A stretch of 63,992 bases of DNA, counting the filler, from Reticulomyxa filosa (taxonomy: Eukaryota > Protista > Foraminifera): the NCBI GenBank assembly GCA_000512085.1. It is 16 parts of 16 records of this genome, joined end to end, with 100 filler letters (N's around TTAATTAATTAA, not from the genome) between each part and the next. Parts side by side here need not be neighbours in the genome. Positions count along the whole stretch, not along the records: positions 1 to 21,201 come from ASPP01005800.1; 15 more parts are not named here. One strand, written 5' to 3'. Shown here one piece after another: positions 27 through 21,358 of the stretch. The notes below the pieces were generated by a model. That model saw only the letters and a list, made by a program, of their open reading frames with translations, was not told where the DNA came from and ran no database searches. Position numbers and translations under genes: made by a program. How positions within the stretch are numbered: the stretch's first letter is position 1; each line of letters opens with the position of its first letter.

Positions 27-2681
27 ATATGTACATCTTATGCCGATAATGCCACGGTAGTGGGTATTACCACAGTAGAGAGAGAGAACGCTTCTTGTAT
101 CGCGAACGCAAGGAAGACGTTTGTGAGCGAAGACAAGCTCTCCGCAATATCGATGATCCAACACAAGTATGGCATCAACGACGTGAAAAGACATTCGCTG
201 TTGAATTGGCTGGACGACGTGATCAAAGACTTGAATGATCGCAGTGGAGGTCGCATCGTGACAAAGTACACTGGCCAAGTCGCGCTGTGGAACGACATGC
301 AAGAAGAGAGCAAGAAGACGATCAAAAGCCACTTGTTCGTGATCCCATTAATCTTGCTCATTTTCGGATACACCATTGGCAGTTGGAGACTGACACTCAT
401 CCCCATCGTCGCCATGTTGATCTGTGTCAGTCTGGCATTCATGATGATGTTACCATTCACAGATATATTCACCGTGTCCACAATGACGCCGACTATTATG
501 ACGAGCATCTCGTTGGCAATGTGCATTGACTACAACTTGTTTATGCTGATCCGCTTTCGCGAAGAGGTGGGAGACGAACGAGAGGTGCTGAAGATGTCCG
601 AGGTGTTTAATGCATTGCATAAGACTGTCAACTGGAGTGGACACGTCGTTTTGGTCAGTGGCTTTATCTTGGCCCTGTCACTCATGGGTTACATTTTCTG
701 TTCCATCGAGTTTCTCAAGTCCTACGGACTGGGCGCCGCCATCGCCGTCGGCTGTGCCATTGCTATCAATTTGACGCTCACGCCGGCCCTCTTGTTGCTT
801 GCTCCGCGCTTCTTCACGCAATTCGGGTTCAATTGTCGACTCACCACTATCATTGATGATCTTGACGAGCCACAGGGTATGTACAAACACTTTGCCCAAA
901 GGGGGGGAGAAGTTTTAAACAAACAAAAAAAAAAAATGAATAAACAAATATATACATATATATATAATATATATGTATATATTTGTTTATTCACTTTTGT
1001 TTATGCACTTTTATGTATGCACTTTTATGTATGCACTTTTGTTTATTCATTCATTTGAACAGAAGCTTCAGCGGAAGAGACACTCGGAGGAGGGGATTAT
1101 GGGACCAACCAAAATGAGACATTGTCGAATGAGCCAGAACAAAGCATACAAGAAAAAGAACATTCGGAAACAGAGGTGTCAGCGACAGCAGACGAGAAAG
1201 TAACAAAAGGGGCAATGGAAAATGGAAATGGAAACAAAGACGACAGAATACAAAGCGTCGTCCAAAGACACATCCGCATTGATATCGAAAGTGGACGATG
1301 AGCATATTGGAATAAGAGACAACGATGATCCCTTTCATCCATTTGAGATAACGGCGGCGGACGAGGCCAACTATTTCAAAAGTGTTGGTTCGTGTGCGGC
1401 ACGTGGACGACGTTGTTTCCATGTTCGTTATTGATCATCATTTTGGTGTATGCATTGATATTGCCAATAGCAATAGTGACGAAGGACATTGAAATTTCGT
1501 ATGCACAGACATTGGACATGCCACGTGACTCGACACATTGGAAGACGTTTCATCGAGTTAGCGAGCATTTCAGCAGTGGTTTGATTGGTCCAATGTACAT
1601 ATTAATCCGTGCCCCTTCCGGAGTGAACGTATTCAATTACTCGTATATTAACGATACGGCATTATTTTTCCAAGACGTGTTGTCGCAGTTGAATGACACG
1701 GTCGGACAAGTCGACCATGTGCGCGGTGTGTCGGTGGTCGGCGGACAATATTTGGGTGGTAAGAATCACAATGTCACGCAGTCCACGTATCAGTCTTCGT
1801 ATGCGAAGAGCAAGCTGTATCATGCATTGGTCGACAGCTACGTCGGCCAACATAACGCTGAGTCATACTTTGTGATGTTAACACACAACGATCCAAATGG
1901 CATGGATTGCAAACGCATTGTCAACCATATTCGAGACGTTATCAATCCAACGTGTAAACGACAGCTCAAACCATTGGGCTATCAATGCTATTATTACAGC
2001 AATTCCGCAAAGACGGTCGATGCCATTGATGACTTGTATCGCACATTCCCCTGGATTTTATTCATCACTATGATCTTCATCTTCTTAATCGCTGGTCTGA
2101 TTTGGAGAAATATGTTCTTACCTTTGCGTCTGTTCCTTACCATTGCCATGCCCATGTTCATGATCTACGGTCTTACTGTGCTCGTGTTTCAACACGGCTG
2201 GCTGTCCTGGCTTCACTCCAAGAGTGTCGATGACACCCATGGCATTGCCTGGATCATTCCTCTCATGACCATCACTCTCCTCTTTGGCTTGGCCTTGGAC
2301 TACGATATCTTTCTCTGGTCCAGAATCGACGAATACATGAAACATGGCATTCCTTTGCGTCCTGCTATTGTGCGTGGCGTCTTCAAAACTGGATCCATCA
2401 TCACTGCTGCTGGTCTCATCATGGCTTGTGCGTTCTCGGGCTTACTCTTGTCCACTGTTCCTGCTCTCAATCAGGCCGGCTTCATCTTGGTCGCCTCTGT
2501 CTTGGTTGACACCTTCATCATTCGCACCTCGTTGGTCCCTTCCATTCTCAGCATTTCTCTCAATGTCACGTGGCATCCCAAATGGCAGCAGCGGATCTAT
2601 CATCTTCTTGGATGGTCTGTCCCTCACACTGATACTGACACTGACACTCAAGAAACTGCTCGGCTGCTCCATAGTGAATAA
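27..2681 (+). CDS. MMPL/RND-family membrane transporter, 5'-partial, one clear intron (877-1062), apparent frameshifts near 1220 and 1383
   Basis: Two hydrophobic halves with MmpL motifs: SLAMCIDYNLFMLIRFREE and SGHVVLVSG (ORF 12..1058); FGLALDYDIFLWSRIDE, GSIITAAGLIMACAF and VDTFIIRTSLVP (ORF 1392..2681). GT donor at 877, AG acceptor at 1062. Confidence 0.85.
937..993. repeat. Perfect 27-bp inverted repeat (3-nt loop) in an intron
   Basis: tgaataaacaaatatatacatatatat (937-963) is the exact reverse complement of 967-993. Confidence 0.95.
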
Positions 2682-3095
2682 TCAATCATATTCCTTTCTT
2701 TCTTTTCATTTGGCTCTACGGGTTATTTCATTCAATTGTACATCATTTCAACCATTTCTTTGCAAAAAAAAAAAAAAATTTGCTTCAAACATTTTGGATT
2801 TTTTGTTGCATAATTGGGTAACTTGTTCCGGTGAATTTTTTTACGGTCATTTATGGTTCTGTTTTTTAAACAAAGCTTTTGTTTTGTTAATGGCATCTTT
2901 GCTCTTTTGTCATCAAAGACACTTCATTTTGCACATAAAAAGTAACTTCAATTTAATCATTCATTTTAGTCAGAGTGGCAAATACTCTTTTGCCATAAGA
3001 CTTACCTTATTTTACTATGTACTAAGGCAGCTATACAGAACATCAACTTTTTAAAAAGGTTTGAGACTGGGAGGGAAAAAGACGAAATTTAAGAC

Positions 3096-5794
3096 ATGTC
3101 AAAATTGCCAGAAACAAATGTTACTCCTGACCAACAAAAGGATGGTGCTCAATTGTCCATGGTGCCTGAAGAAGAGAAAACAGCAGATATCCCCAACCCA
3201 AATGTTCCAAACCCTCGTTCTCGGCATTATAGTGAATTTCAGCATGCTCAACTCACCCGTCAACAAAGTGACAGCATGAGCACTTCACATAGCAAATCAA
3301 GGTCACAAGAAGTTATATCTTTGAGTCATGCAAATAAAGTCAATTCAAGTGCGAATAATGCGTACAAATCAAACTTAGCGTCAAGACCACAAGAACCAGA
3401 TAACCTTCAAAGCAAATTCATAGGCGATGCAATTAATCTCTTCTCCAGAAAAAAGGTTAATTCAAAAAGTATACACATAGTGCACACATAGATCATATTG
3501 TAAGGCATTTATTCAAAGAAATAGTGTATCCTATTGAAAGGGAAATGTTTATTTATGTGTGTGGTGTATGTGTACGTGTGAAATCTTCAGCAAAATAACC
3601 CAAACGAAGAAAACAACGCCGAGCACGAAACCAAGGAAATGAGTATCGGCAGACCAATGAATGTGCAACACCTGATCCATGTCGCATGGGATGAAAAATC
3701 AAAATCTTACACAGTTTAGTGTGGTTTTGCAAATACACAAAACTCTTACTTTTTTAATACCACGACAATATGCCAAATATGCTGACTGCACCTATTTCTT
3801 TTTTTTTTTTCCTCCCCCCCTTGTTTTTTTTTCAATGTACGTATACAAGGGGAAAAAAAAACAACATTAAAACAAGGTTTCTATTGTGATTACTTTGACA
3901 TTGTGTACTAACTACGTAAATGAGAGAAAAAAATAATAATAATAACAAAACAAAAAAAAAAAAAGGGATTGCCAGAGGTTTGGCAGGCAGTGATTCCTCA
4001 ATCAAGAACAGTGACAACAGACAGTCTTCCCGTCTCAATTCCAGAACCGAACTTTACTCGCAAAATTAGTGCGCCTCCACTAAGTGCCGCCCTTGGTGGC
4101 ATCGTATCGGGTCCCTCGATGGAAAGGCGTAGGAGCTCGCTGACAGTGGTTTCCACGGCCGCAAATGTCAATGGTAATGCAAGTGCACCAACCACACGGT
4201 CATCCATCGCAGCCAATGGGGCACCGTCCAATCCAAATGCGTCATTTATAAGCAGTTCCACTTCGACTAGCAATAATGGAAACAACACCAATTTAGGCTC
4301 AATCTCAAGTTCCAATTTGAACAATGTCAACTCTGGTGTGAATTCCAACGTGGTCACCACAAACCCCATTCCATTTGTAATATCTTCCGTCCACGACATA
4401 AGTGCTGTCGACATTCCTGAAGTTTTCCTTCCACATGAAATGAAAAAGGGAGAGAGAGAGAACGCACACAAAAAAAGGACTACGTGGGGACAACAAAGAC
4501 TTTGAATAGATACAACGTATCCACACACGCACACATACAACATACAACAAAAAAAAAAAGCAAGCGTTGCCTCCGCCGGGACCTCGTGTGTTTGTCGGAC
4601 CGCGCCCAAACAAAGACACAAAACCCAATATCGACTTGGATTTGGGAATGGACTTCCACGGCCTGATGCCAAACCAGGTCATGAGCGTGGCAGAATATCT
4701 TCAGCATATTGGCTTTGACGATTTGCAAAAAACAATGACTGTGATGCAAATACGCCGAGAATTTTATATTAAAATGGGCTTTTCCAAACGCAATCTTTTA
4801 TTGGATGTCCCTAGAGCTATCCAAAGATTCATCATGTCTTATTTGGAAACGCGCTCCTTTTTAAGGACATGCATCACCTGTTCGGACCTCGCCTCTTTTT
4901 TGGATGATCCTTACATTTGGAGAATTTTGGTCTTATATACTGCAAAAGTGCAAGGTACCTTTCCATTTACGTTAAGCATTATGCTTTTTGTTACTTTTTT
5001 TTTTGGGAAAAAAAAGGTACATTGCATGAAACTTTTGTGTTGCGACATCGCGGATGGAAAGCAACGTGCTTAACAATGAACAAAATCGACAAAGATCCTC
5101 GCTATTATGATCATGTTTGGAATGTAGTGGTCGCGGGAGATGTGAAAGTGGGCCAAGAGCGATTGGTGGTGACTCTGGGAAAACACTGGCGATGCCGCTT
5201 AACGAATATCGAACCTGTCGTTTCTGCAGTGAATGGAACCTATCGCTTCGGTATTGATTTTGTTGTTCGCAGAGTGGTTATGAAAGAGTTGGTTATCAAG
5301 CTTCAAGTGTGGGATGGTGGTAATGTCATGGCGGACGCGCAATTACTGCAATCTGTTCACATCTTTTTAGTGTTGTTCGATGTCACTAATCAAGAAAGCT
5401 ACAATCGTGTTTCCTCTGTCGTTCGAGCTATGATGGAGCTTGTCCGAAATGCGTTTTAGTTGTATTCGCTTTTCTGCTGTTTACTTTGCCACTTTGTCTT
5501 GGTGTCAGCTCCAATGTAGACTCTGTTTTTATGAATAGGATGGCGGAAGATGTGCAACTGATGATGGTCGGAAACACTACCAATCACCCTGAGAAGCGCG
5601 TCATATCCTATGAGTCGGCCAAAAGATTTGCAAATGAACGAGGGCTTATGTATATCGAGGCCAACACGGACCATCCTGAATCTGTTAACAAAGCCTTTGT
5701 CACTTTGGCCACTGAATGCATCAACTTTTCCAAAATTCAAATGCGACAGCAAGGTGCAAATACTAAAAATCGAACCAATTGTTCTGTAATGTGA
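3096..5794 (+). CDS. Six-exon protein: CRIB/PBD, N/S-rich linker, LisH-like motif, F-box, degenerate Rab-like GTPase, CaaX
   Basis: Exons 3096-3455, 3591-3713, 3966-4421, 4561-4954, 5017-5452 and 5539-5794 join in frame at GT-AG. Motifs: SIGRPMNVQHLIHVAWD..YT|GLPEVW (PBD), VAEYLQHIGF (LisH-like), LLDVPRAIQRFIMSYL..DDPYIWR (F-box), GIDF..IKLQVWD, FDVTNQESY, C-terminal CSVM. Confidence 0.8.
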
Positions 5795-10170: not shown

Positions 10171-10774
10171 TTACTTTGCAAAGTATTTGTCTTGGATATT
10201 TTGCGTCATCGCCACGTCGATTTGCGTGGACTGCTCTGCGAGACATGCGTCGTCTGACAAAGGTGTACGTGGGAGGAACGTGCGGGAGGACGGACACGAC
10301 AGAAATCGATGAATTTTCGCTGTGTTGTCGTATACTTCAGGTGCTGTCTTTTTTTTATCTTTTTTTTTTAAAAAATACAAGGTTCATTCGATGATGGTAA
10401 TCCCTTTTCAATAAAAAAATTTCTTTTTTTCGATCCCTTTCTATCTTACCCTTCTTTTTGAGGCCGGCTCCGGTACCTTTGAGCTGAAGCGCACTCGGCG
10501 AAAAACGATACAACATATTGTCATCTTTAAAATTATGGTTTTGATTCACGTGCTGAATCAAACCCAAACGAACTAGTTGACGTCCTATTGTCGCCGCTTC
10601 TTCTCGTGTCTTCGAGTATCCCTTATTTATTAGCCAATCTACACATTCCTTGCCGACAAAACATTGTTTATGAGTTCGCAAATGATACACTCTATCTTTT
10701 ATATCTAGGCCTCGTATTAAATGTTCAACTAAATCTGCTGAGATTAATACCTCTCTTTTTTTTGATGTGGACAT
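10171..10774 (-). CDS. DEP-domain exon(s), possibly the 5' end of the Kaptin-like gene
   Basis: IKDRVYHLRTHKQCFVGKECVDWL..TREEAATIGRQLVRLGLIQHVNQNHNFKDDNMLYRF is a canonical DEP domain. GTAAGA donor at 10449 joins an in-phase acceptor at 10344. Confidence 0.85.
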
Positions 10775-12256: not shown

Positions 12257-13124
12257 ATGTCCACAGAAGAGAAAAAAGAGCAACAAGTAGAATCCACCGA
12301 ACCAAAAAAAGAAGAAGGAGGACTAGATGATGATGGAGACGACGAGATTGTACTGAAGACAGTAGGAGAGGACGGGAAAGACGGAAAATCTTTCTCGATA
12401 AAAAAAATATTGTAAACTTTCCAACTTTGTTATGACAATTTTGAAAGGTAATGTCCAAAAAAAGTGTAATAGGAGGCGTGATCTCTTTTGGGTTGTCCTA
12501 AATATTATTTCCGAGGATAAAAAATTTTTTATGAACGATAGGTGATCCAACTGCTAAGGAAATTGAAGTCCGTCAAGTTGGCAGTGACACATTAGAGAAT
12601 ATTGTCAAGTATTTGAACGAACACAAAGGTGAGGAACCTCCTCCGTTGCCTTGCCCAGTTCGATCAACGGAAATGTCACAAATAGTGTCAGTAAAATGGG
12701 ACGCCGAGTTTATTGATGCTTTTGACAAAAAAGCTATTTTTGAAATTATTTTGGTACGTTTGTGTCCATGTATTCTTTTTTACCTTGTTTGTTACAATCA
12801 ATTTAACAATTCCTAACCTTAAATATGATTTTGTTTGTTGGCCTGATTGAATCGGGTGATGCATATGAATTGCTTCGCAAGGGCGCAAACTACATGGGTA
12901 TGTTTTTTTTTGAAAACTGTACGTGTGTTATCGCTTATGATGATTTGTTGAAAAAATCTGTTGTAGATATAAAATCGTTGTTGCATTTGGGATGTGCCAA
13001 GATTGCAACTTTGATTAAAAAGTTGGACCAAAAGGAAATTAACCGTATCATTGAAGAAGAAGAAAAATGGCAAAAGGAACACGGTGGTGGTGACAAGACA
13101 GAAGAAAAGGAAGCATCATCCTAA
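12257..13124 (+). CDS. SKP1: Skp1-family SCF adaptor; four exons including a 16-nt micro-exon; frameshift in an A-run near 12400
   Basis: TLENIVKYLNEHK..WDAEFID..IFEIIL|GANYM|DIKSLLHLGCAKIATLIK. Micro-exon at 12882-12897. Confidence 0.88.
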
Positions 13125-14327
13125 AAAAGACCCAAAGTGAGGACCAGCAAAAAACACCATTTATTTTTGTAAGACATTTTTTTTTTTGGTGAAATTGTGG
13201 CCTTGTGTCTGTTGCAGTTGTTGACTGGAATCAGATACAAGTGTTTGTTTTCTACTCATGGGTGGCTCTTTAAAAGAAATTGAATAAACATTCATTTGAA
13301 TCAATTACAATATGAGACAATGAAACCCTTTTTCCTCAAAACAACACAATGTCCCTTTCTCCATTTTTAAAGGCTGTGGATATTAAAGATGAACGTACGA
13401 ATATTGCCCAAAAAACATAGAAAAATTGCAAAAGGAAATTTAAATAAACACGAAACTAACGTGATGCATTACTTGTAAAATTTATAAAAACGATCTAATT
13501 CTGACGCTATCCTGTTAAAAGAAGTGATCACTGCCAAAAACACGCCAAAAATTAAACCTCTTCTTCAAACACAATAGAAAAGTGTTTGATCAGTTTTTAT
13601 TATTACTTTTTTGTGACAAGAACGAACGTTTTTGGAATACTAAGGGAACTAACAGATAAATCTAGGACAACTCAAGAAAAAATTATTTTGTTTTTTGTGT
13701 AAGTTTCCAAAAACAACAAACAATTTGCGATTGTGACAAAAAACGAGTTGTTTATTCGGAATTTTGTCTTTCTTAACAAAGAAAAAACGAGTGCGTGCAT
13801 CTCCCTTTTACTTTGAAATCTTGCACTTTCATTATTAGCTCTTTATTTTAAAGGTTGTAAACAAATCTGGTCATTTCTTATCTTTACAGGTGAAATTCTT
13901 TCTCCATTTGAGCGTAGCTCACAGTAGCAAACGCTCAAGCGTAAACAAATCGAAGGAACAACTCGTAGATTACAACTTTATAACTTAAACAGGTGAGGAT
14001 ATGGACAACGGATTATGCCCATCGAAGAGAGCAGTAGAAGGTAGCAAATATTCATAAAAAAAAATGAAGTAGCTCAGTTTTTGGCGCATTTGCGCAATAT
14101 CTTGAAGACACGGAATAAAAAAATAGTTGTAAAAGAATTGATTGAGTTGAGACGGTCCGTAATTGATCACATTGAGGTGAATGACAAATCTGCAGTTCCA
14201 TCAATAGAACAAACAATGCAAAATTAAACAAAGATTAAATAAATTATCATATATTTTACTTGTTTTGCAACAATCTAATCAAAAACGTTTTATGTAATGT
14301 GAAAATAAGGATTATAAAAAGAAGCAC

Positions 14328-17300
14328 ATGTGCACACGTGTGTACGAATATGCAAAGAAGCATAAGAAACTGAAAGGAGGAATGCAAAATGAACTGGAAC
14401 AAGATAAATTTTTAGTAGAAATGAAAGCACTGATAAGATTGTGTGGTGATGTGGTTGAAGAAGAGGTGTTGCGAAAACAATTGGAAGAAGCAAATGGAAA
14501 CGTATCTGTTGTGATTGAAAATATGGTTTCCAGATTTATGAGTGAAAATGAAATGAAGGAAAAGGATAAGAAAAAAGAGATAGAGAATATTACAGAAAAA
14601 ATAGAAAAAGGAAAAAGAGAAGAGGAAAAAATAGATATTGGTGAAACAAAACCAGGAATAAATTTGCAAGGTTATTGTTCAAATAAAAAATGTCTAGCAG
14701 CAAAAGGAAAGTTATTAGTATGGATAAATATTGGTTTTAATGAGATATCATTTGTATCAGATAAAGCATCATATTCTTGTCCAGATTGTAAGGGATTAAG
14801 TGTAGCATTAATTGAAAAAGTAAAATTTATAAATTCGGAATATTCAATAATAGCAAGCGATAAATCGACAATATTAGAGAATAAAAATATTTATCAAAGT
14901 ACATACGTAATAAACTCAGGATTAAAATATAAATTAAAAGCAAAAAAAATTAAACAGCATGCAACAAATGTAGATGATTTAATAAATCGAAGTGAACAAG
15001 CAATGAAAAGTAAAGAAATAATAAAATTGATAAAAGAATTAGAAGACTCTGGTATTAAAGTAGTTAATCCACCAAAAATAAAAGAAAAACAAAGATTACT
15101 AGAAAAAATAGAAAATGATTATAATGGTGACTTTAATCAAGCGTTTGATATTGGAAGATTTACCATTTTATGTGAAAATATTACAAATTTAAAAACTGCA
15201 GTTGCTGTGATGAAAGAAGCAGAGAAATTTAACTTAATTGTATCTGAAGATAAAAATTTTTTTGAAGCACAATCTAAAACACATTATCGTGTCCACATTA
15301 TTAAATTATATGCTCCAAACGATGATGTCTACATTGAAATGCAAGCAACATTAAAAAAATTTACAACATTGGAAGGACACACTGTGATTGAAAATGCAAA
15401 ATTAAGTCATGATTTGTATGATATCAATCGGGTATGGAAAGTAAATGATTCAACAAATCAAAAAGAAACATTATTTAAACAAGCAAGTGATGAAATATTA
15501 ACTAAAATTAATGATATTTTTTGTGAATGGATTGAAGAAAAACAAATACAAAAAATTTCCGATCGTTATAAATCACATTTAAGTATTGGTATTTTAAAAC
15601 CACCACAATTAGATTACAAAAATTCTTCTAACATCAATCATAGCACTCCATTAAAACTTATCGAATTTGTCTATCAACAACTTTGTAATTTTATTCCAAG
15701 TACAATTAAAGGAAAAGCTATTTATGTTACTTTATATGAATTTTATAAACAATACATTATTGAAAGACATCAACCAGCAAGCTGTTTTGATTTTTCATTA
15801 CGATTACAAAAATCTAAAAGTCAACAAATACAGCAAGATGTGACAATAGTACAAGCACTTGAAACATACATACCATTAGAAGCAAATAATTACCCATACA
15901 ACGAAAATGAAAATACTGATCAAAAATATATATCATATGATTGCTATGAGCATGTAATGAAATTTTTAGAATTAAAAGAAGATGACAAAAAAATTAATGA
16001 ACGACATTCAAATAAAATAATGATAATTCAAGGTAAATCAGGATCTGGAAAAAGTCTTTTTTGTCGCCATTTAGAAGATAAATTATGGAATAATTATTCA
16101 TTTGATTTAAAAAGACCTATTCCTGTTTTTATTTCATTGCCGAAAGTTTACAATCAATATAACAAAGAAAAACAAGATGATATTATTTTACAATCATTGC
16201 CATATAAAAATATTAGTAAACACATTATTAATGAAATTCGTAATAAATTATCTTTTATATTCATTATGGATGGATTTGATGAAATATTTAATTCGTATCG
16301 TAACAATGTCAATAATAATAAATATTTTTATGATTATTTTAATTTAAATCAATGGAATGCAAATATTGTTATTACTTGTAGAAGTGATGTATTACATGAT
16401 GATGATATTAAACAGATGTTAATGGGTATAAATCAAAACAATATACCCAAAACAACAACAAAAATGATGCATTTATGGCCATTTACTAAACAACAAACTT
16501 ATAGTTATATAGAAAAATTTGCAAGCATGTTAAAAAATAACAAGAAAAATAGCATCAATATTAACATTAATAATAACGTTGATTGGGATTTACAACAATA
16601 TAAAGAAACATTAAACAATTACCCAAATTTAAAAAGAATGATGGAACAACCATTTCTTCTTCAAATTATTTTAACAGTTTTGCCGTCATTAACAAAACAA
16701 TACGATAATGGAAGTAATCTTTCTAAAACACAAATATATGAAGCATTTCATAATTATTGGATTGATCTTCGTGTTCAAAATTTAATTAATAGATTAGCAA
16801 AATTAAAAATTCAAATTAATTATAAAAAAATTAAATCTACATTTTATAAATATTGTATTGATCTAGGATTTGAAATGTTTATTCAAGGTAAATCAATTGC
16901 AATTGAAGAAGATATTCAAGATGAAGAAAATGAAAAAATATGCATTAAATTAGATCCAAAAGAAGAAGAAGGAGAAAAGACAGAAGCAAAAAAGAACGAT
17001 GTTAAAATGGAAACAGAAAAATCAATTACTAAAAATGTTTGGGAAAAATATTTCAATGGTGATAGTATTGCTAAATATATATTAAAAAGAGTTGAGAGCG
17101 ATAAATATGAATTTTTACACAAGTCATGTCAAGAATATTATGCAGCACAAAAAATAATATTGGATATAATATTATGGAAACCAAATGACATAAATAATTT
17201 AAATAATGCACAATTTCAAAAACAATTTGAAAGTAATATTCATAAATTATTAATTAATTATAAATTACTAAATGAGGAATTAGGAATTATTCAATTTATT

Positions 17301-19634
17301 GCAGAAAGAATTCATGACAATAACGCAATATATATAAATTTGAAATCGAGACTATTTAGAATTATTGAAGCATCAAAACATAATTCTAATATCAATATTG
17401 CAGCATCTAATGCAATAACAATACTTAATTTTGCGAGAATAAGTTTAAATAATCAAAATTGGAATAATATAAAAATTCCATATGCAATATTAGATCATGC
17501 ATTTTTGGAAGGAACAAATTTACAAAATGCATATTTAAATCAAGTTTCATTTTTTCAAGCATTTTTGAATAAAGTAAATTTTTCTAATGCATCAATGACT
17601 CAAAGTTATTTTGGTGAATATGCATATTTAAAAGGACATTCAAGTAGAATTAATGAAGTAAAATTTTCAGCAGATGATTTACAAATTGTATCATGTTCAG
17701 AAGATAAAACAATACGAATATGGGATACATTATCAGGAAAGCAGCTAAAATTATTTGAGGGACATACAGATGATGTACGTGGAATAGAATTTTCAAATGA
17801 TAATTCTAAAATTTTATCATGTTCATGGGATAAAACAATAAGATTATGGGATACAATATCTGGGAAACAAATACAAATATTTGAAGGACATAATATGTAT
17901 GTAAATGCAGCATATTTTTTACCAAATGATAATACTAAAATTATATCATGTTCAGATGACGAAACTATTCGATTATGGGATACAATATCTGGAAAACAAA
18001 TACAAATATTTGAAAAACACGAAGGCTATGTAAAACAAGTACAATTTTCACCAGATTGTTCAAAAATTGTATCATGTTCATGGGATAAAACAATAAGATT
18101 ATGGGATATAATATCCGGAAAACTAATGCAAACATTTGAAGGACATTTACATCCAGTAAGGAATGTACATTTTTCATCAGATGGTTCCAAAATTATATCA
18201 TGTTGTGAAAACACAGTTAGAATATGGGATATAATATCTGGAAAGCAATTACAAATATTTGAAGATAATTTTAACAATGTAAATGATGCAAAATTTTCGT
18301 CCAATGATTCTACTATTATTTTGTGTTCAAATAATATAATCCAAATATTAGATGCGTTATCAGGAAAACAGATTCAAATATTAGAAGGACATTCAGGCTC
18401 AATAAATGGTATACATTTATCTTCAGATGGTTCTAAAATTGTATCATGCTCAAGTGATAAAACTATTCGATTATGGGATACATCGTCAGTACAAAAAATA
18501 CCATTTTTAGAAGGACATAAGGATACTATTAATCATGTAAAATTTTCATCTGATTTTTCTAAAATTGCATCATGCTCGAAAGATAAAACAATAAGAATAT
18601 GGGACACACTATCAGGAAAACAATTGCAATTATTTGAAGGACATACAAAGGATGTAAGTGGAATAGAATTTTCAAGTGATAGTTCAAAAATGGTATCTTT
18701 TTCGTCGAATGAAATAATAAGATTATGGGATACAATATCTGGAAAACAAATACAAATATTTGAAGGACATAATAAGTTTATAAATGCAGTACATTTTTTA
18801 CCAAATGATAATACCAAAATTATATCATGTTCAGCAGATAAAACCATTCGATTGTGGAATGTCTTTTCTGGCGAACAAATTCAAATATTTGAAGGACATA
18901 GTGATGAAATTAATGGAATACATTTTTCTCATTCAAATAGTTTACAAATTGTATCATTTTCAATGGATAATACAATAAGATTATGGGATATATCAGGAAA
19001 GCAAATTCAAATATTTGAAGGACATACTGCTTGTATAAATGATGTAAAATTTTTACCAAATGATCATTCTAAAATCCTGTCATGTTCTAATGACAATACA
19101 ATTAGATTATGGGATACATTATCAGGAAAACAATTACAATTATTTAAAGGTCATTCAGATGACATTGATGGAATAACATTTTCATCAGATGGTCTCAAAT
19201 TTCTATCATTTTCAAAAGATAAAACAATAAGAATATGGGACATTTCATCAGAAAATCAAATTCAAATATTACGCGGACATAAAAATAAGATTAATTTTGC
19301 TCAATTTACTTCTGATGGAAATAAAATTGTTTCTTGTTCAAATGATGAAACAATAAGAATATGGGATTTATCTAAAAAACAAGTTCGAATATTAGAAGGA
19401 CATTCAGATTACGTAACTAAAATACAACTTTCTTCAGATGATTCAAAACTTATATCATGTTCAAGTGATAGAACAATTCGATTATGGGGAATTGATAATA
19501 AAATGGGGTTAATAAAATGCATTTGGCAAAGTGGTATTCAAAGTTGTGGACTATCAATGAAAGGAAGTATTTGGGAAAATGTCAATGGTTTAACACCTCA
19601 ACAGGAATTACTTGTAAAACAACGTTTAATTTAA
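14328..19634 (+). CDS. NLR/STAND-like protein: CUE-like, Zn-binding, RelA/SpoT-like nucleotidyltransferase, NACHT-like NTPase, pentapeptide repeats, 15 WD40 repeats
   Basis: Uninterrupted 1768-aa ORF (the true start may be the ATG at 14382). Walker A GKSGSGKS (16032), Walker B FIFIMDGFDE (~16270), sensor-1 VITCR, winged-helix FLHKSCQEYYAA (~17110), pentapeptide AFLEGTNLQNAYLNQVSF, and WD40 repeats at ~17630-19490. Confidence 0.92.
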   Translation: MCTRVYEYAKKHKKLKGGMQNELEQDKFLVEMKALIRLCGDVVEEEVLRKQLEEANGNVSVVIENMVSRFMSENEMKEKDKKKEIENITEKIEKGKREEEKIDIGETKPGINLQGYCSNKKCLAAKGKLLVWINIGFNEISFVSDKASYSCPDCKGLSVALIEKVKFINSEYSIIASDKSTILENKNIYQSTYVINSGLKYKLKAKKIKQHATNVDDLINRSEQAMKSKEIIKLIKELEDSGIKVVNPPKIKEKQRLLEKIENDYNGDFNQAFDIGRFTILCENITNLKTAVAVMKEAEKFNLIVSEDKNFFEAQSKTHYRVHIIKLYAPNDDVYIEMQATLKKFTTLEGHTVIENAKLSHDLYDINRVWKVNDSTNQKETLFKQASDEILTKINDIFCEWIEEKQIQKISDRYKSHLSIGILKPPQLDYKNSSNINHSTPLKLIEFVYQQLCNFIPSTIKGKAIYVTLYEFYKQYIIERHQPASCFDFSLRLQKSKSQQIQQDVTIVQALETYIPLEANNYPYNENENTDQKYISYDCYEHVMKFLELKEDDKKINERHSNKIMIIQGKSGSGKSLFCRHLEDKLWNNYSFDLKRPIPVFISLPKVYNQYNKEKQDDIILQSLPYKNISKHIINEIRNKLSFIFIMDGFDEIFNSYRNNVNNNKYFYDYFNLNQWNANIVITCRSDVLHDDDIKQMLMGINQNNIPKTTTKMMHLWPFTKQQTYSYIEKFASMLKNNKKNSINININNNVDWDLQQYKETLNNYPNLKRMMEQPFLLQIILTVLPSLTKQYDNGSNLSKTQIYEAFHNYWIDLRVQNLINRLAKLKIQINYKKIKSTFYKYCIDLGFEMFIQGKSIAIEEDIQDEENEKICIKLDPKEEEGEKTEAKKNDVKMETEKSITKNVWEKYFNGDSIAKYILKRVESDKYEFLHKSCQEYYAAQKIILDIILWKPNDINNLNNAQFQKQFESNIHKLLINYKLLNEELGIIQFIAERIHDNNAIYINLKSRLFRIIEASKHNSNINIAASNAITILNFARISLNNQNWNNIKIPYAILDHAFLEGTNLQNAYLNQVSFFQAFLNKVNFSNASMTQSYFGEYAYLKGHSSRINEVKFSADDLQIVSCSEDKTIRIWDTLSGKQLKLFEGHTDDVRGIEFSNDNSKILSCSWDKTIRLWDTISGKQIQIFEGHNMYVNAAYFLPNDNTKIISCSDDETIRLWDTISGKQIQIFEKHEGYVKQVQFSPDCSKIVSCSWDKTIRLWDIISGKLMQTFEGHLHPVRNVHFSSDGSKIISCCENTVRIWDIISGKQLQIFEDNFNNVNDAKFSSNDSTIILCSNNIIQILDALSGKQIQILEGHSGSINGIHLSSDGSKIVSCSSDKTIRLWDTSSVQKIPFLEGHKDTINHVKFSSDFSKIASCSKDKTIRIWDTLSGKQLQLFEGHTKDVSGIEFSSDSSKMVSFSSNEIIRLWDTISGKQIQIFEGHNKFINAVHFLPNDNTKIISCSADKTIRLWNVFSGEQIQIFEGHSDEINGIHFSHSNSLQIVSFSMDNTIRLWDISGKQIQIFEGHTACINDVKFLPNDHSKILSCSNDNTIRLWDTLSGKQLQLFKGHSDDIDGITFSSDGLKFLSFSKDKTIRIWDISSENQIQILRGHKNKINFAQFTSDGNKIVSCSNDETIRIWDLSKKQVRILEGHSDYVTKIQLSSDDSKLISCSSDRTIRLWGIDNKMGLIKCIWQSGIQSCGLSMKGSIWENVNGLTPQQELLVKQRLI

Positions 19635-21358
19635 CTTTTATGGAGTCAATTTGTGTAAGTTTGAAATTGTTTTTTGGTAAAATTTCAAGTATTTTTGAAA
19701 ATTACTGATGTAAATAATTTTGATGAAATTATAATTTTTTTTTATATTGTGTGGAAAATTTTACAAAAAGTTATCAATAATTTTCAATTTTTAAACTCCA
19801 ATATTACTCAAAATCAATCACAAACAATAAAGAGAAATGAAATTAGAAGCAAGTACAAAGGAGATCACAAATTTTTTACGGCTATAAATAATCGAATATT
19901 GTAATACAATTCTTTCCAAAAAAAAAGCATATTTATAATTTATACGGAAGAGACTGTTTTACTTTAAAAGAATGAAGAATTTCTGACAATGATCTTGATG
20001 TAACAAATTTACAAAAATGACAAAGACAAATCAACGACAAAATCCTCAACACACGTCAGACATAAAAAAAATTATATTTTTCTGATAACAAAACCATGTC
20101 ATATGAAGTAGTGTCTTGTGTTTTCACACAATACCATTTTTACTTTTTCAAATATTTGCTTAAATGGATATCGATCCACTTTTGTACTTAGACATAACAA
20201 CATTTTCATGCTATCATTCAACAGTGAAAAAACAGCAATTTGATATTCTTGTGTAGTTGATCAAAAATTCATCATTATTTCCAAACAACTTATTTCTGTG
20301 TTCACAAATAATCGTTATCAATTCATCATTTTGTTTAGTATTTTTGCGAAGTTCAACATCAACAAACAGAAATACACAAAGTATATTGTTTACTTTTAAG
20401 TAACATTATTGATGTGATGACAATTAATACAATTCAATAGAACACGAATCGCAGAAATATTTTCATGTCTCAAATTATTTTCCATTTATCTTGATTCCAC
20501 ATAGATAAGGGGAAGATCATAATGATTGTATTTGGTGTGAGAGAGAAGATACTGTATAGTATTCTTGATGGAATGCTTGAGGTATCAAAAATTACGTTGC
20601 AATTGGTGGACAAATGTCCAAGAATTGCTTACAGACATTAATGTATTTCACTGTCGTTGAAAAATTCATTATTGGTGATCGATCGTGGAAACAGTATGTT
20701 AATTTTTTTTTAGCTGATAGAATGTTGTAATATTGAAATTCCAAAAAATATTTAATATCAAAAATCTGAAAGAAAAAATGAAAACATAAAAACATATTAA
20801 TGTTTCTTTACTAAATTGTGATATCAACAGGTCTGATCAAAATATACGTTGATATTCCACAAAGCATCCAGATTCCCTGAAGAGACCCAGTTCACAATTT
20901 AAAAGGAAACAAAGCGTGAGTTTGTTCCGACTGGCTGCATTCACAAAAACTTTGGTATGTGCTGAATGAAGATGTAAGATATAACACTAATTCAAACAAA
21001 TGAAACAAAACATCAATTTACTTTGTTAAAAAAAATTTTCCTTAGGTATTTGCAAGCCCTAAAGGAAAATGAAAGCTATGTTTTACCCATTTGGTGCTTT
21101 TCCAACACACAATAACATATTTTTGCTGTTTAGGACCTTCGGCATTTTCTTTCGCACGTTACCGGCGCGAGTGCTTTCCGCGCCTCTTAATGAGATGCCG
21201 GNNNNNNNNNNNNNNNNNNNNNNNNNNNNNNNNNNNNNNNNNNNNTTAATTAATTAANNNNNNNNNNNNNNNNNNNNNNNNNNNNNNNNNNNNNNNNNNN
21301 NGTGTTAAGTTTATTAAGCATTAATTAAAAAAAAAAATACATGTCATTGGAAACATAG

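Follow-up and report, generated by a model that had tools for sequence, protein, structure and literature searches.

RelA/SpoT-type domains joined to a NACHT NTPase and WD40 repeats are described from fungi, where RelA_SpoT is one of 12 N-terminal effector classes of the NOD-like receptors (NLRs) (Dyrka et al. 2014, PMC4986451). That catalogue names RELA_SPOT-NACHT-WD40 proteins outright, for example from Gaeumannomyces graminis, and its authors speculate on ppGpp-based manipulation of bacteria by these receptors (PMC4986451). In the Sordariales, 14 RelA_SpoT NLRs, or 82% of the class, have the T-NACHT layout (PMC12258605), and later surveys retain RelA_SpoT as a rare canonical class of fungal NLR (PMC12258605, PMC9815663). 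The protein analysed here has the same layout and comes from the foraminiferan Reticulomyxa filosa. It is encoded at 14328..19634 (+) of a 63,992-nucleotide stretch of assembly GCA_000512085.1 (the window: 16 parts of 16 records joined end to end with filler, positions 1 to 21,201 being from ASPP01005800.1).

To our knowledge, pyrophosphokinases of the alarmone type are considered to be enzymes of bacteria and plastids. Toxic forms of these RelA/SpoT homologues (RSH), namely Tas1, the toxic small alarmone synthetases (toxSAS) and CapRel, are known to serve in warfare between bacteria and in defence against phages. Tas1 (PDB 6OX6) is a (p)ppApp-synthetase toxin of the Pseudomonas aeruginosa type VI secretion system and is neutralised by an immunity protein. 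RelQ and RelP are small alarmone synthetases (SAS), free-standing homotetramers that make (p)ppGpp, and CapRel combines a sensor and an RSH toxin in a single chain that acts in defence. A further group of RSH domains forms the C-termini of bacterial polymorphic toxins led by eCIS_core/DUF4157 or phage MuF domains, all of them delivered toxins.

The R. filosa protein shares with the fungal RelA_SpoT NLRs the effector-NACHT-WD40 layout with up to 14 WD40 repeats, and both are known from sequence only (PMC4986451, PMC12258605). It differs from them in its rhizarian host, in a domain copy number of at least 130, and in an RSH domain that scores below the Pfam threshold, lies nearest to Tas1 and is flanked by a four-Cys beta domain and a helical region; this comparison is one of described layouts. 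The combination is not new in kind, having been catalogued computationally in fungi in 2014. A preliminary description of the locus had singled it out as the best candidate in the window for an undescribed system, a view that is not supported, RELA_SPOT-NACHT-WD40 NLRs having already been listed in fungi (PMC4986451, PMC12258605). New are a rhizarian as host, the scale on which the domain has multiplied, a subtype that is Tas1-like and falls below the Pfam threshold, and two additional conserved modules, among them the four-Cys beta domain. A literature search combining Reticulomyxa or Rhizaria with NACHT, NLR or ppGpp returned nothing relevant, and a prior mention in the R. filosa genome paper is possible. 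No functional test of any fungal RelA_SpoT NLR, a class listed since 2014, was found in the searchable literature.

The RelA/SpoT-type domain and its nearest relatives

The gene is a single uninterrupted open reading frame (ORF) that starts with ATG and encodes 1768 residues followed by a stop codon, without an internal stop. The protein, an NLR-like member of the STAND class (signal transduction ATPases with numerous domains), consists in order of a variable N-terminus, a four-Cys beta domain, the RSH domain, a helical region, the NACHT domain, a pentapeptide-repeat stretch and 14 WD40 repeats. The RSH domain, of the RelA/SpoT synthetase fold, spans residues 213-401 (14964..15530, +). Downstream of it, the NACHT NTPase at residues 564-732 (16017..16523, +) matches PF05729 with E 2e-10 (41 bits against a cut-off of 26.7), and its motifs are intact, with Walker A (GKSGSGKS) at 569 and Walker B (IFIMDGFDE) at 644. 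The 14 WD40 repeats, at residues ~1095-1725 (17610..19502, +), suffice for two propellers; the DNA of this region is a tandem array of a 126-nt unit in 14.5 copies with 67% matches.

Within the RSH domain, K252, R256, E259 and K260 lie in the stretch KIKEKQRLLEK, followed by DYNGD at residues 264-268 (Y265, G267, D268). Further along the chain are D274, G276 and R277 in DIGRFTI; Y320, R321 and H323 in HYRVH; E337 and Q339 in YIEMQ; and H361, Y364 and R368, the first two of these in SHDLY. The codon of D274, at the DxxGxR-type motif position, occupies 15147..15149 (+), and that of E337, at the ExQ motif position, 15336..15338 (+). In alignments, K252/R256/K260, D274/R277, Y320 and E337/Q339 coincide with the RSH motif positions in Tas1, in RelP and in distant relatives.

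Pfam RelA_SpoT (PF04607) matches residues 251-340 with E 2.8e-5 and 24.8 bits (24.6-25.2 across runs), against a gathering score of 27; 13-15 R. filosa paralogues pass this cut-off, with 27-31.7 bits, and P0070 scores 30.2 bits. Used as a single sequence, the protein finds Tas1 (6OX6) as its best PDB match at E 0.022, with the K-x3-R-x3-K helix, DYxGD and D..R.TI aligning conspicuously. An exhaustive phmmer search with residues 215-520 against 1.84 billion representatives gives 69 matches. Among the matches outside the R. filosa family are proteins with PF04607 (P0049, P0055, P0062, P0063, P0065 and P0067), the RelA_SpoT-linked E values ranging from 1.8e-12 to 1e-3, and a 3127-residue eCIS_core toxin (P0044) is reached at E 1.8e-12.

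Six R. filosa family members and 19 distant relatives make up alignment A2, in which PF04607 is matched individually by 16 of the 25 sequences. K260, D274 and E337 are invariant throughout this alignment, and K252, R256, G267, R277, Q339, H361, Y364 and R368 each show conservation of 90% or more. Compared with the PDB, the A2 profile matches Tas1 best (E 3.2e-22; 166 profile positions, Tas1 residues 249-426) and then RelP/YwaC (8.6e-9), Staphylococcus aureus RelP, an exported Streptomyces SAS, RelQ and the long RelA/Rel enzymes. A profile built from the paralogues only (A1) gives a marginal match to Tas1 (E 0.024), and significance needed the distant relatives in the profile.

The AlphaFold2 model of residues 95-560 has a mean predicted local distance difference test score (pLDDT) of 86 and a predicted template modelling score (pTM) of 0.75, and it predicts the alpha/beta nucleotidyltransferase fold of the synthetase domain for residues 213-401. 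Foldseek places Tas1 at the top of the PDB with this model (E 5e-7; template modelling score 0.56 by target). Among the best 50 of the 58 matches with E <= 0.001, all are RSH synthetases (RelQ, RelP, SaSAS, CapRel, Rel/RelA) apart from one putative nucleotidyltransferase, and the probability to Tas1, RelQ, RelP, CapRel and Rel is 1.00. VIA-align superposes Tas1 with Z 12.9 over 172 of 194 residues (root-mean-square deviation 3.5 A, 19% identity), within model residues 119-307, which correspond to residues 213-401 of the protein. RelQ follows with Z 11.9, RelP with 11.4 and CapRel with 10.9 and 10.5, and generic Pol-beta-type nucleotidyltransferases (Cid1, URT1, CdnE, cGAS, MenT) score at most 8.3.

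The Pfam match, the Tas1 matches in PDB and profile searches and the predicted fold make the resemblance of the motifs more than chance, and residues 213-401 are a member of the RSH synthetase superfamily, in which no characterised enzyme stands closer to them than Tas1 in sequence or in fold. The preliminary description had placed synthetase motifs in KIKEKQRLLEK and at D274, Y320, E337 and H361, had expected a nucleotidyltransferase fold, and had recognised an effector-NACHT-WD40 layout in a rhizarian protist; translation, the Pfam and A2 profile matches, the AlphaFold2, Foldseek and VIA-align results, and the NACHT and WD40 matches bear it out on each of these points.

With Tas1, the R. filosa domain has in common the K/R/K phosphate-binding helix, DYxGD, D..R.TI, GY, an ExQ motif without Arg, and H..YE..R. 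Tas1 is a secreted interbacterial toxin with an immunity protein, whereas the R. filosa domain is internal to a 1768-residue eukaryotic protein, fused to a STAND NTPase and WD40 repeats, and is not a secreted effector of the Tas1 kind; within 1.5 kb after the stop codon, no small ORF of the immunity type, at 80 residues or more, is listed on the + strand. RelQ, RelP and CapRel have the same fold (Z 10.5-11.9) and equal motif positions. CapRel also resembles the R. filosa protein in joining sensor and toxin in one chain, but it is regulated via a C-terminal pseudo-zinc-finger domain, not by NACHT and WD40 modules, and gives no profile-level sequence match. The nearest sequence relatives outside Reticulomyxa are the C-termini of polymorphic toxins (P0044, eCIS_core; P0055, eCIS_core and RelA_SpoT; P0063, Phage_Mu_F and RelA_SpoT), which, unlike the R. 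filosa protein, are delivered toxins and group elsewhere in the tree.

In a maximum-likelihood tree of A2, whose root is arbitrary and whose branches are long, the R. filosa sequences and the metagenomic P0018 form a clade with support 100/98. This clade joins an RSH protein with tetratricopeptide repeats (RSH-TPR, P0065) and two ankyrin-RSH-NACHT proteins (Ank-RSH-NACHT, P0059 and P0060) with moderate support (92/89), and the eCIS_core-led and MuF-led toxin domains lie on the opposite side. This sequence-based grouping hints that the STAND-associated RSH domains are a lineage of their own. P0018 is an ENA metagenome contig of 471 residues with 40% identity, which suggests that relatives exist outside the R. 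filosa assembly; together with P0059/P0060 and P0065, all metagenomic, it has the version of the domain that, among proteins of STAND-like or repeat-linked layout outside Reticulomyxa, comes nearest. Homologue searches, including those seeded with P0059 and P0065, returned R. filosa only or the query itself, with no fungal member among the results.

In the R. filosa assembly (101.9 Mb, 50,809 contigs), the search for the RSH domain scored 129 of its 412 candidates and shows at least 130 matches to residues 215-520. Some 75 of these span the full query and are free of stops; in-frame stops occur in seven. For the NACHT region, 513 candidates yielded 101 matches, most of them on contigs that also have RSH matches. 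More than 100 copies lie on separate contigs, with 44-73% protein identity, mostly 55-67%. The 48 full-length relatives are all from R. filosa, nearly all with NACHT and WD40; they are named WD-40, NACHT or NB-ARC proteins, and none was seen named for its RSH domain. Two side observations concern the arrangement of the module. Contig C6763 has two RSH matches (1204-1980 and 2350-3255, +) within one open frame of 1032 residues, an effector module tandemly duplicated inside one gene, and the 1017-residue R. filosa protein P0014 has the RSH module at residues 719-970, with no NACHT domain detected by Pfam.

Residues were counted over 64 non-identical copies with a complete domain. D274 and H361 are kept in all 64, E337 in 63 (the remaining copy has a gap), K252 in 63, K260 and Y364 in 62 each, and R256 in 60; the conservation of D274 and E337 among paralogues, which the preliminary description had proposed to examine, is thus nearly complete. 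The Y320 position is His in 57 copies and Tyr in six. The RSH domain is also the most conserved segment of the protein, with a mean pairwise identity among 32 full-length proteins of 0.78, against 0.68 for the pentapeptide repeats, 0.66 for NACHT, 0.64 for the helical region, 0.63 for the beta domain, 0.52 for the WD40 array, the lowest among the domain and repeat segments, and 0.31 for the first 94 residues. NLR repertoires would be expected to pair a constrained effector with a diversified repeat sensor, as is seen here.

Proposed activity and competing explanations

The protein very probably carries a genuine RSH-fold effector on an NLR-like scaffold. The domain is probably catalytically active, and (p)ppApp is put forward tentatively as its product. 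For the statement as a whole, that an active RSH pyrophosphokinase is the effector of an NLR-like switch, we estimate a probability of roughly 0.55. In the proposed mechanism, a ligand, either non-self or altered self, would be bound by the WD40 propellers, and the NACHT domain would oligomerise, releasing or assembling the RSH domains. These would move the beta-gamma pyrophosphate of ATP onto a 3'-OH acceptor, and mass (p)ppApp synthesis with ATP depletion would arrest or kill the affected cytoplasm. The domain would act as a suicide-type effector rather than through a fine-tuned second messenger. Synthesis of (p)ppApp with ATP depletion is favoured because, of the enzymes that have been characterised, Tas1 is nearest, and because the closest relatives in bacteria are toxins that are delivered.

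Several observations weigh against this proposal. The PF04607 score of this copy is below the Pfam gathering score, the ExQxRT motif reads EMQATL, without Arg (as in Tas1), and the Tyr of GYxSxH is His in 57 of the 64 copies. Tas1 leads RelQ, RelP and CapRel by just 1-2 Z, a near tie (about 1 Z for RelQ), and product specificity is not readable from the sequence or the alignment. PADLOC defence models give no match to the N-terminal 560 residues or to the NACHT region, and the immune role is suggested by analogy with NLRs only. A native alarmone hydrolase was not found in the R. filosa assembly, in which the HD_4 matches look bacterial. A search of sequencing runs with the gene returned 'synthetic metagenome' DNA runs with only a small share of words, and no RNA run.

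The explanation that survives best after this one, though unlikely, keeps the architecture and changes the acceptor: the RSH domain would pyrophosphorylate the 3'-CCA of tRNA, as toxSAS of the CapRel/FaRel2 type do, and so shut down translation rather than consume ATP. The toxSAS enzymes act as fused sensor-toxin defence proteins. The structural match to CapRel is moreover strong, with Z values of 10.9 and 10.5 that lie within 2 units of the Tas1 value, and its alignments are the longest, 189-197 residues reaching to model residues 374-383. Against this, CapRel is missing from the A2 profile matches at E <= 1, where Tas1 stands at 3e-22, and in Foldseek it is 100-fold weaker than Tas1.

It is less probable still that the domain makes (p)ppGpp, whether for signalling or for manipulating bacteria that are prey, competitors or symbionts. 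Bacteria are food for R. filosa, and RelP, RelQ and RelA are significant in both the profile and the fold searches; a (p)ppGpp idea has also been proposed for the fungal RelA_SpoT NLRs (PMC4986451). The nearest characterised relative, however, is Tas1, an adenosine-specific toxin, and the protein, whose N-terminus does not resemble a signal peptide, has the layout of a cytosolic NLR, so that the product would form in the host cytosol.

A similarly low probability attaches to the RSH domain being a pseudo-enzyme or nucleotide-binding adaptor that serves for scaffolding only, or to the protein serving outside immunity, for example in deciding by self or non-self whether reticulopodial networks fuse with one another. 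The altered canonical residues fit a pseudo-enzyme, with the ExQxRT Arg absent and most copies having His in place of Tyr, and allorecognition is the function of fungal NACHT-WD40 relatives such as HET-E. Pseudo-enzymes usually lose their catalytic residues, whereas here the predicted nucleotide-binding and catalytic motif residues are near-invariant in 64 copies and in distant relatives, and the RSH domain is the most conserved segment. A role in allorecognition would alter the target of the sensor, not the chemistry of the effector.

A wider proposal, held with somewhat less confidence than an even chance, is that R. filosa may have a large NLR repertoire (at least 130 domain copies, perhaps several hundred genes) with an active Tas1-type pyrophosphokinase as shared effector, that death or arrest in a eukaryote would then have as its main cell-autonomous effector either nucleotide synthesis of the (p)ppApp type with ATP depletion or the pyrophosphorylation of tRNA, that the STAND-fused RSH domains and the metagenomic Ank-RSH-NACHT and RSH-TPR proteins may constitute their own lineage, and that the beta and helical (possibly saposin-like) regions may be new regulatory or targeting modules. 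Rhizaria joins the lineages with expanded effector-NACHT-WD40 NLR-like repertoires. The at least 130 copies with near-invariant catalytic residues provide a natural, strongly constrained set for questions on eukaryotic NLR effectors: whether pyrophosphorylated nucleotides or ATP depletion serve as an NLR effector, which product is made, and how the NACHT-WD40 switch controls the RSH domain.

Flanking modules and gene model

The RSH domain is preceded in all paralogues examined by an all-beta domain at residues 104-207 (14637..14948, +), which is absent from the preliminary description. It is modelled with pLDDT 87-96 and contains four invariant cysteines, C117, C122, C151 and C154, which are possibly a metal site. 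No convincing structural relative was found and no fold assigned: Foldseek gives no match with E < 0.06 for this domain (E >= 0.07 in the detailed results), VIA-align against 48,161 chains reaches a best Z of 5.6, with generic beta-sandwich or cupin-like folds in its results, and the matches in the ESM Atlas are unnamed eukaryotic clusters only.

Between the RSH and NACHT domains, residues 402-555 (15531..15992, +) make up a family-conserved helical region with a weak saposin-like similarity. Its residues ~437-495 (window ~15636-15812) resemble the SapB repeats of a protist saposin protein, P0042 from Eukaryota sp. GEM-RC1. The phmmer E value of 8.7e-13 for P0042 is inflated by nine near-identical SapB repeats, and BLASTP per repeat gives E 2e-4. 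With hhalign, the stretch reaches 52% probability over 20 columns, and Pfam Saposin is matched in two of 32 members at E >= 0.023; just two of the usual six Cys positions are present.

The variable N-terminal extension, residues 1-94 (14328..14609, +), has a mean paralogue identity of 31%. A CUE-like match at residues 43-65 was not accepted, as its E value of 0.02 is under the cut-off and it falls within this paralogue-variable segment. The pentapeptide-repeat stretch recognised by Pfam, residues 1053-1092 (17484..17603, +), sits between the NACHT domain and the WD40 repeats, and the preliminary description is silent on it.

The first 1092 residues are identical to a public model of 1814 residues, 'WD repeat-containing protein [Reticulomyxa filosa]' (P0071). 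This model drops two short stretches as predicted introns: it splices out 11 in-frame residues after residue 1092 (window ~17604-17636) and swaps the last residues of the ORF for a downstream exon (3' end near 19600-19900). The predicted introns are doubtful because the genomic frame is continuous there.

Genomic context

Upstream of the NLR gene, two consecutive ORFs on the + strand resemble MMPL/RND transporters (12-1058 and 1392-2681; E 3e-32 and 3e-29) and may be exons of one gene. They are followed by a Ras-like fragment (4917-5459, +) and a DEP-domain ORF (10355-10774, -), and these neighbours fit a eukaryotic nuclear contig. The NLR ORF has 25.6% GC, with 12.7% at third codon positions (GC3), compared with 36-47% GC in other ORFs of the same contig; the paralogue loci average 30%. 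Although this GC contrast and the presence of bacterial contaminant contigs in the assembly could be taken to mean that the family is non-native, derived from contamination, a mobile element or a virus, such an origin is very improbable, given that eukaryote-type Ras and DEP genes share the 21-kb contig of the gene, that more than 100 divergent copies occupy separate contigs with unshared flanks, and that WD40 repeats, a NACHT domain and a long intron-free ORF misfit a bacterial contaminant at this GC.

Canonical HD_4 matches (to 174 bits) and RelA_SpoT matches (to 79 bits) occur on contigs C7084 (641 bp), C8583 (885 bp) and C32270 (492 bp), which have 61-65% GC. These tiny, GC-rich contigs were rejected as native RSH or alarmone hydrolase genes and are most likely bacterial contamination.

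The flanks of the NLR gene match just short interspersed repeats elsewhere and are not common to the copies, which rules out a recent segmental or transposon-borne duplication; the NLR copies are old duplicates, since their flanks share only such repeats. Interspersed repeats lie at 12950-13275, 20523-20692 and 20745-21000 and are unlinked to the NLR paralogues. The downstream repeat unit of ~170 nt has at least 30 copies on other contigs, at 80-86% identity.

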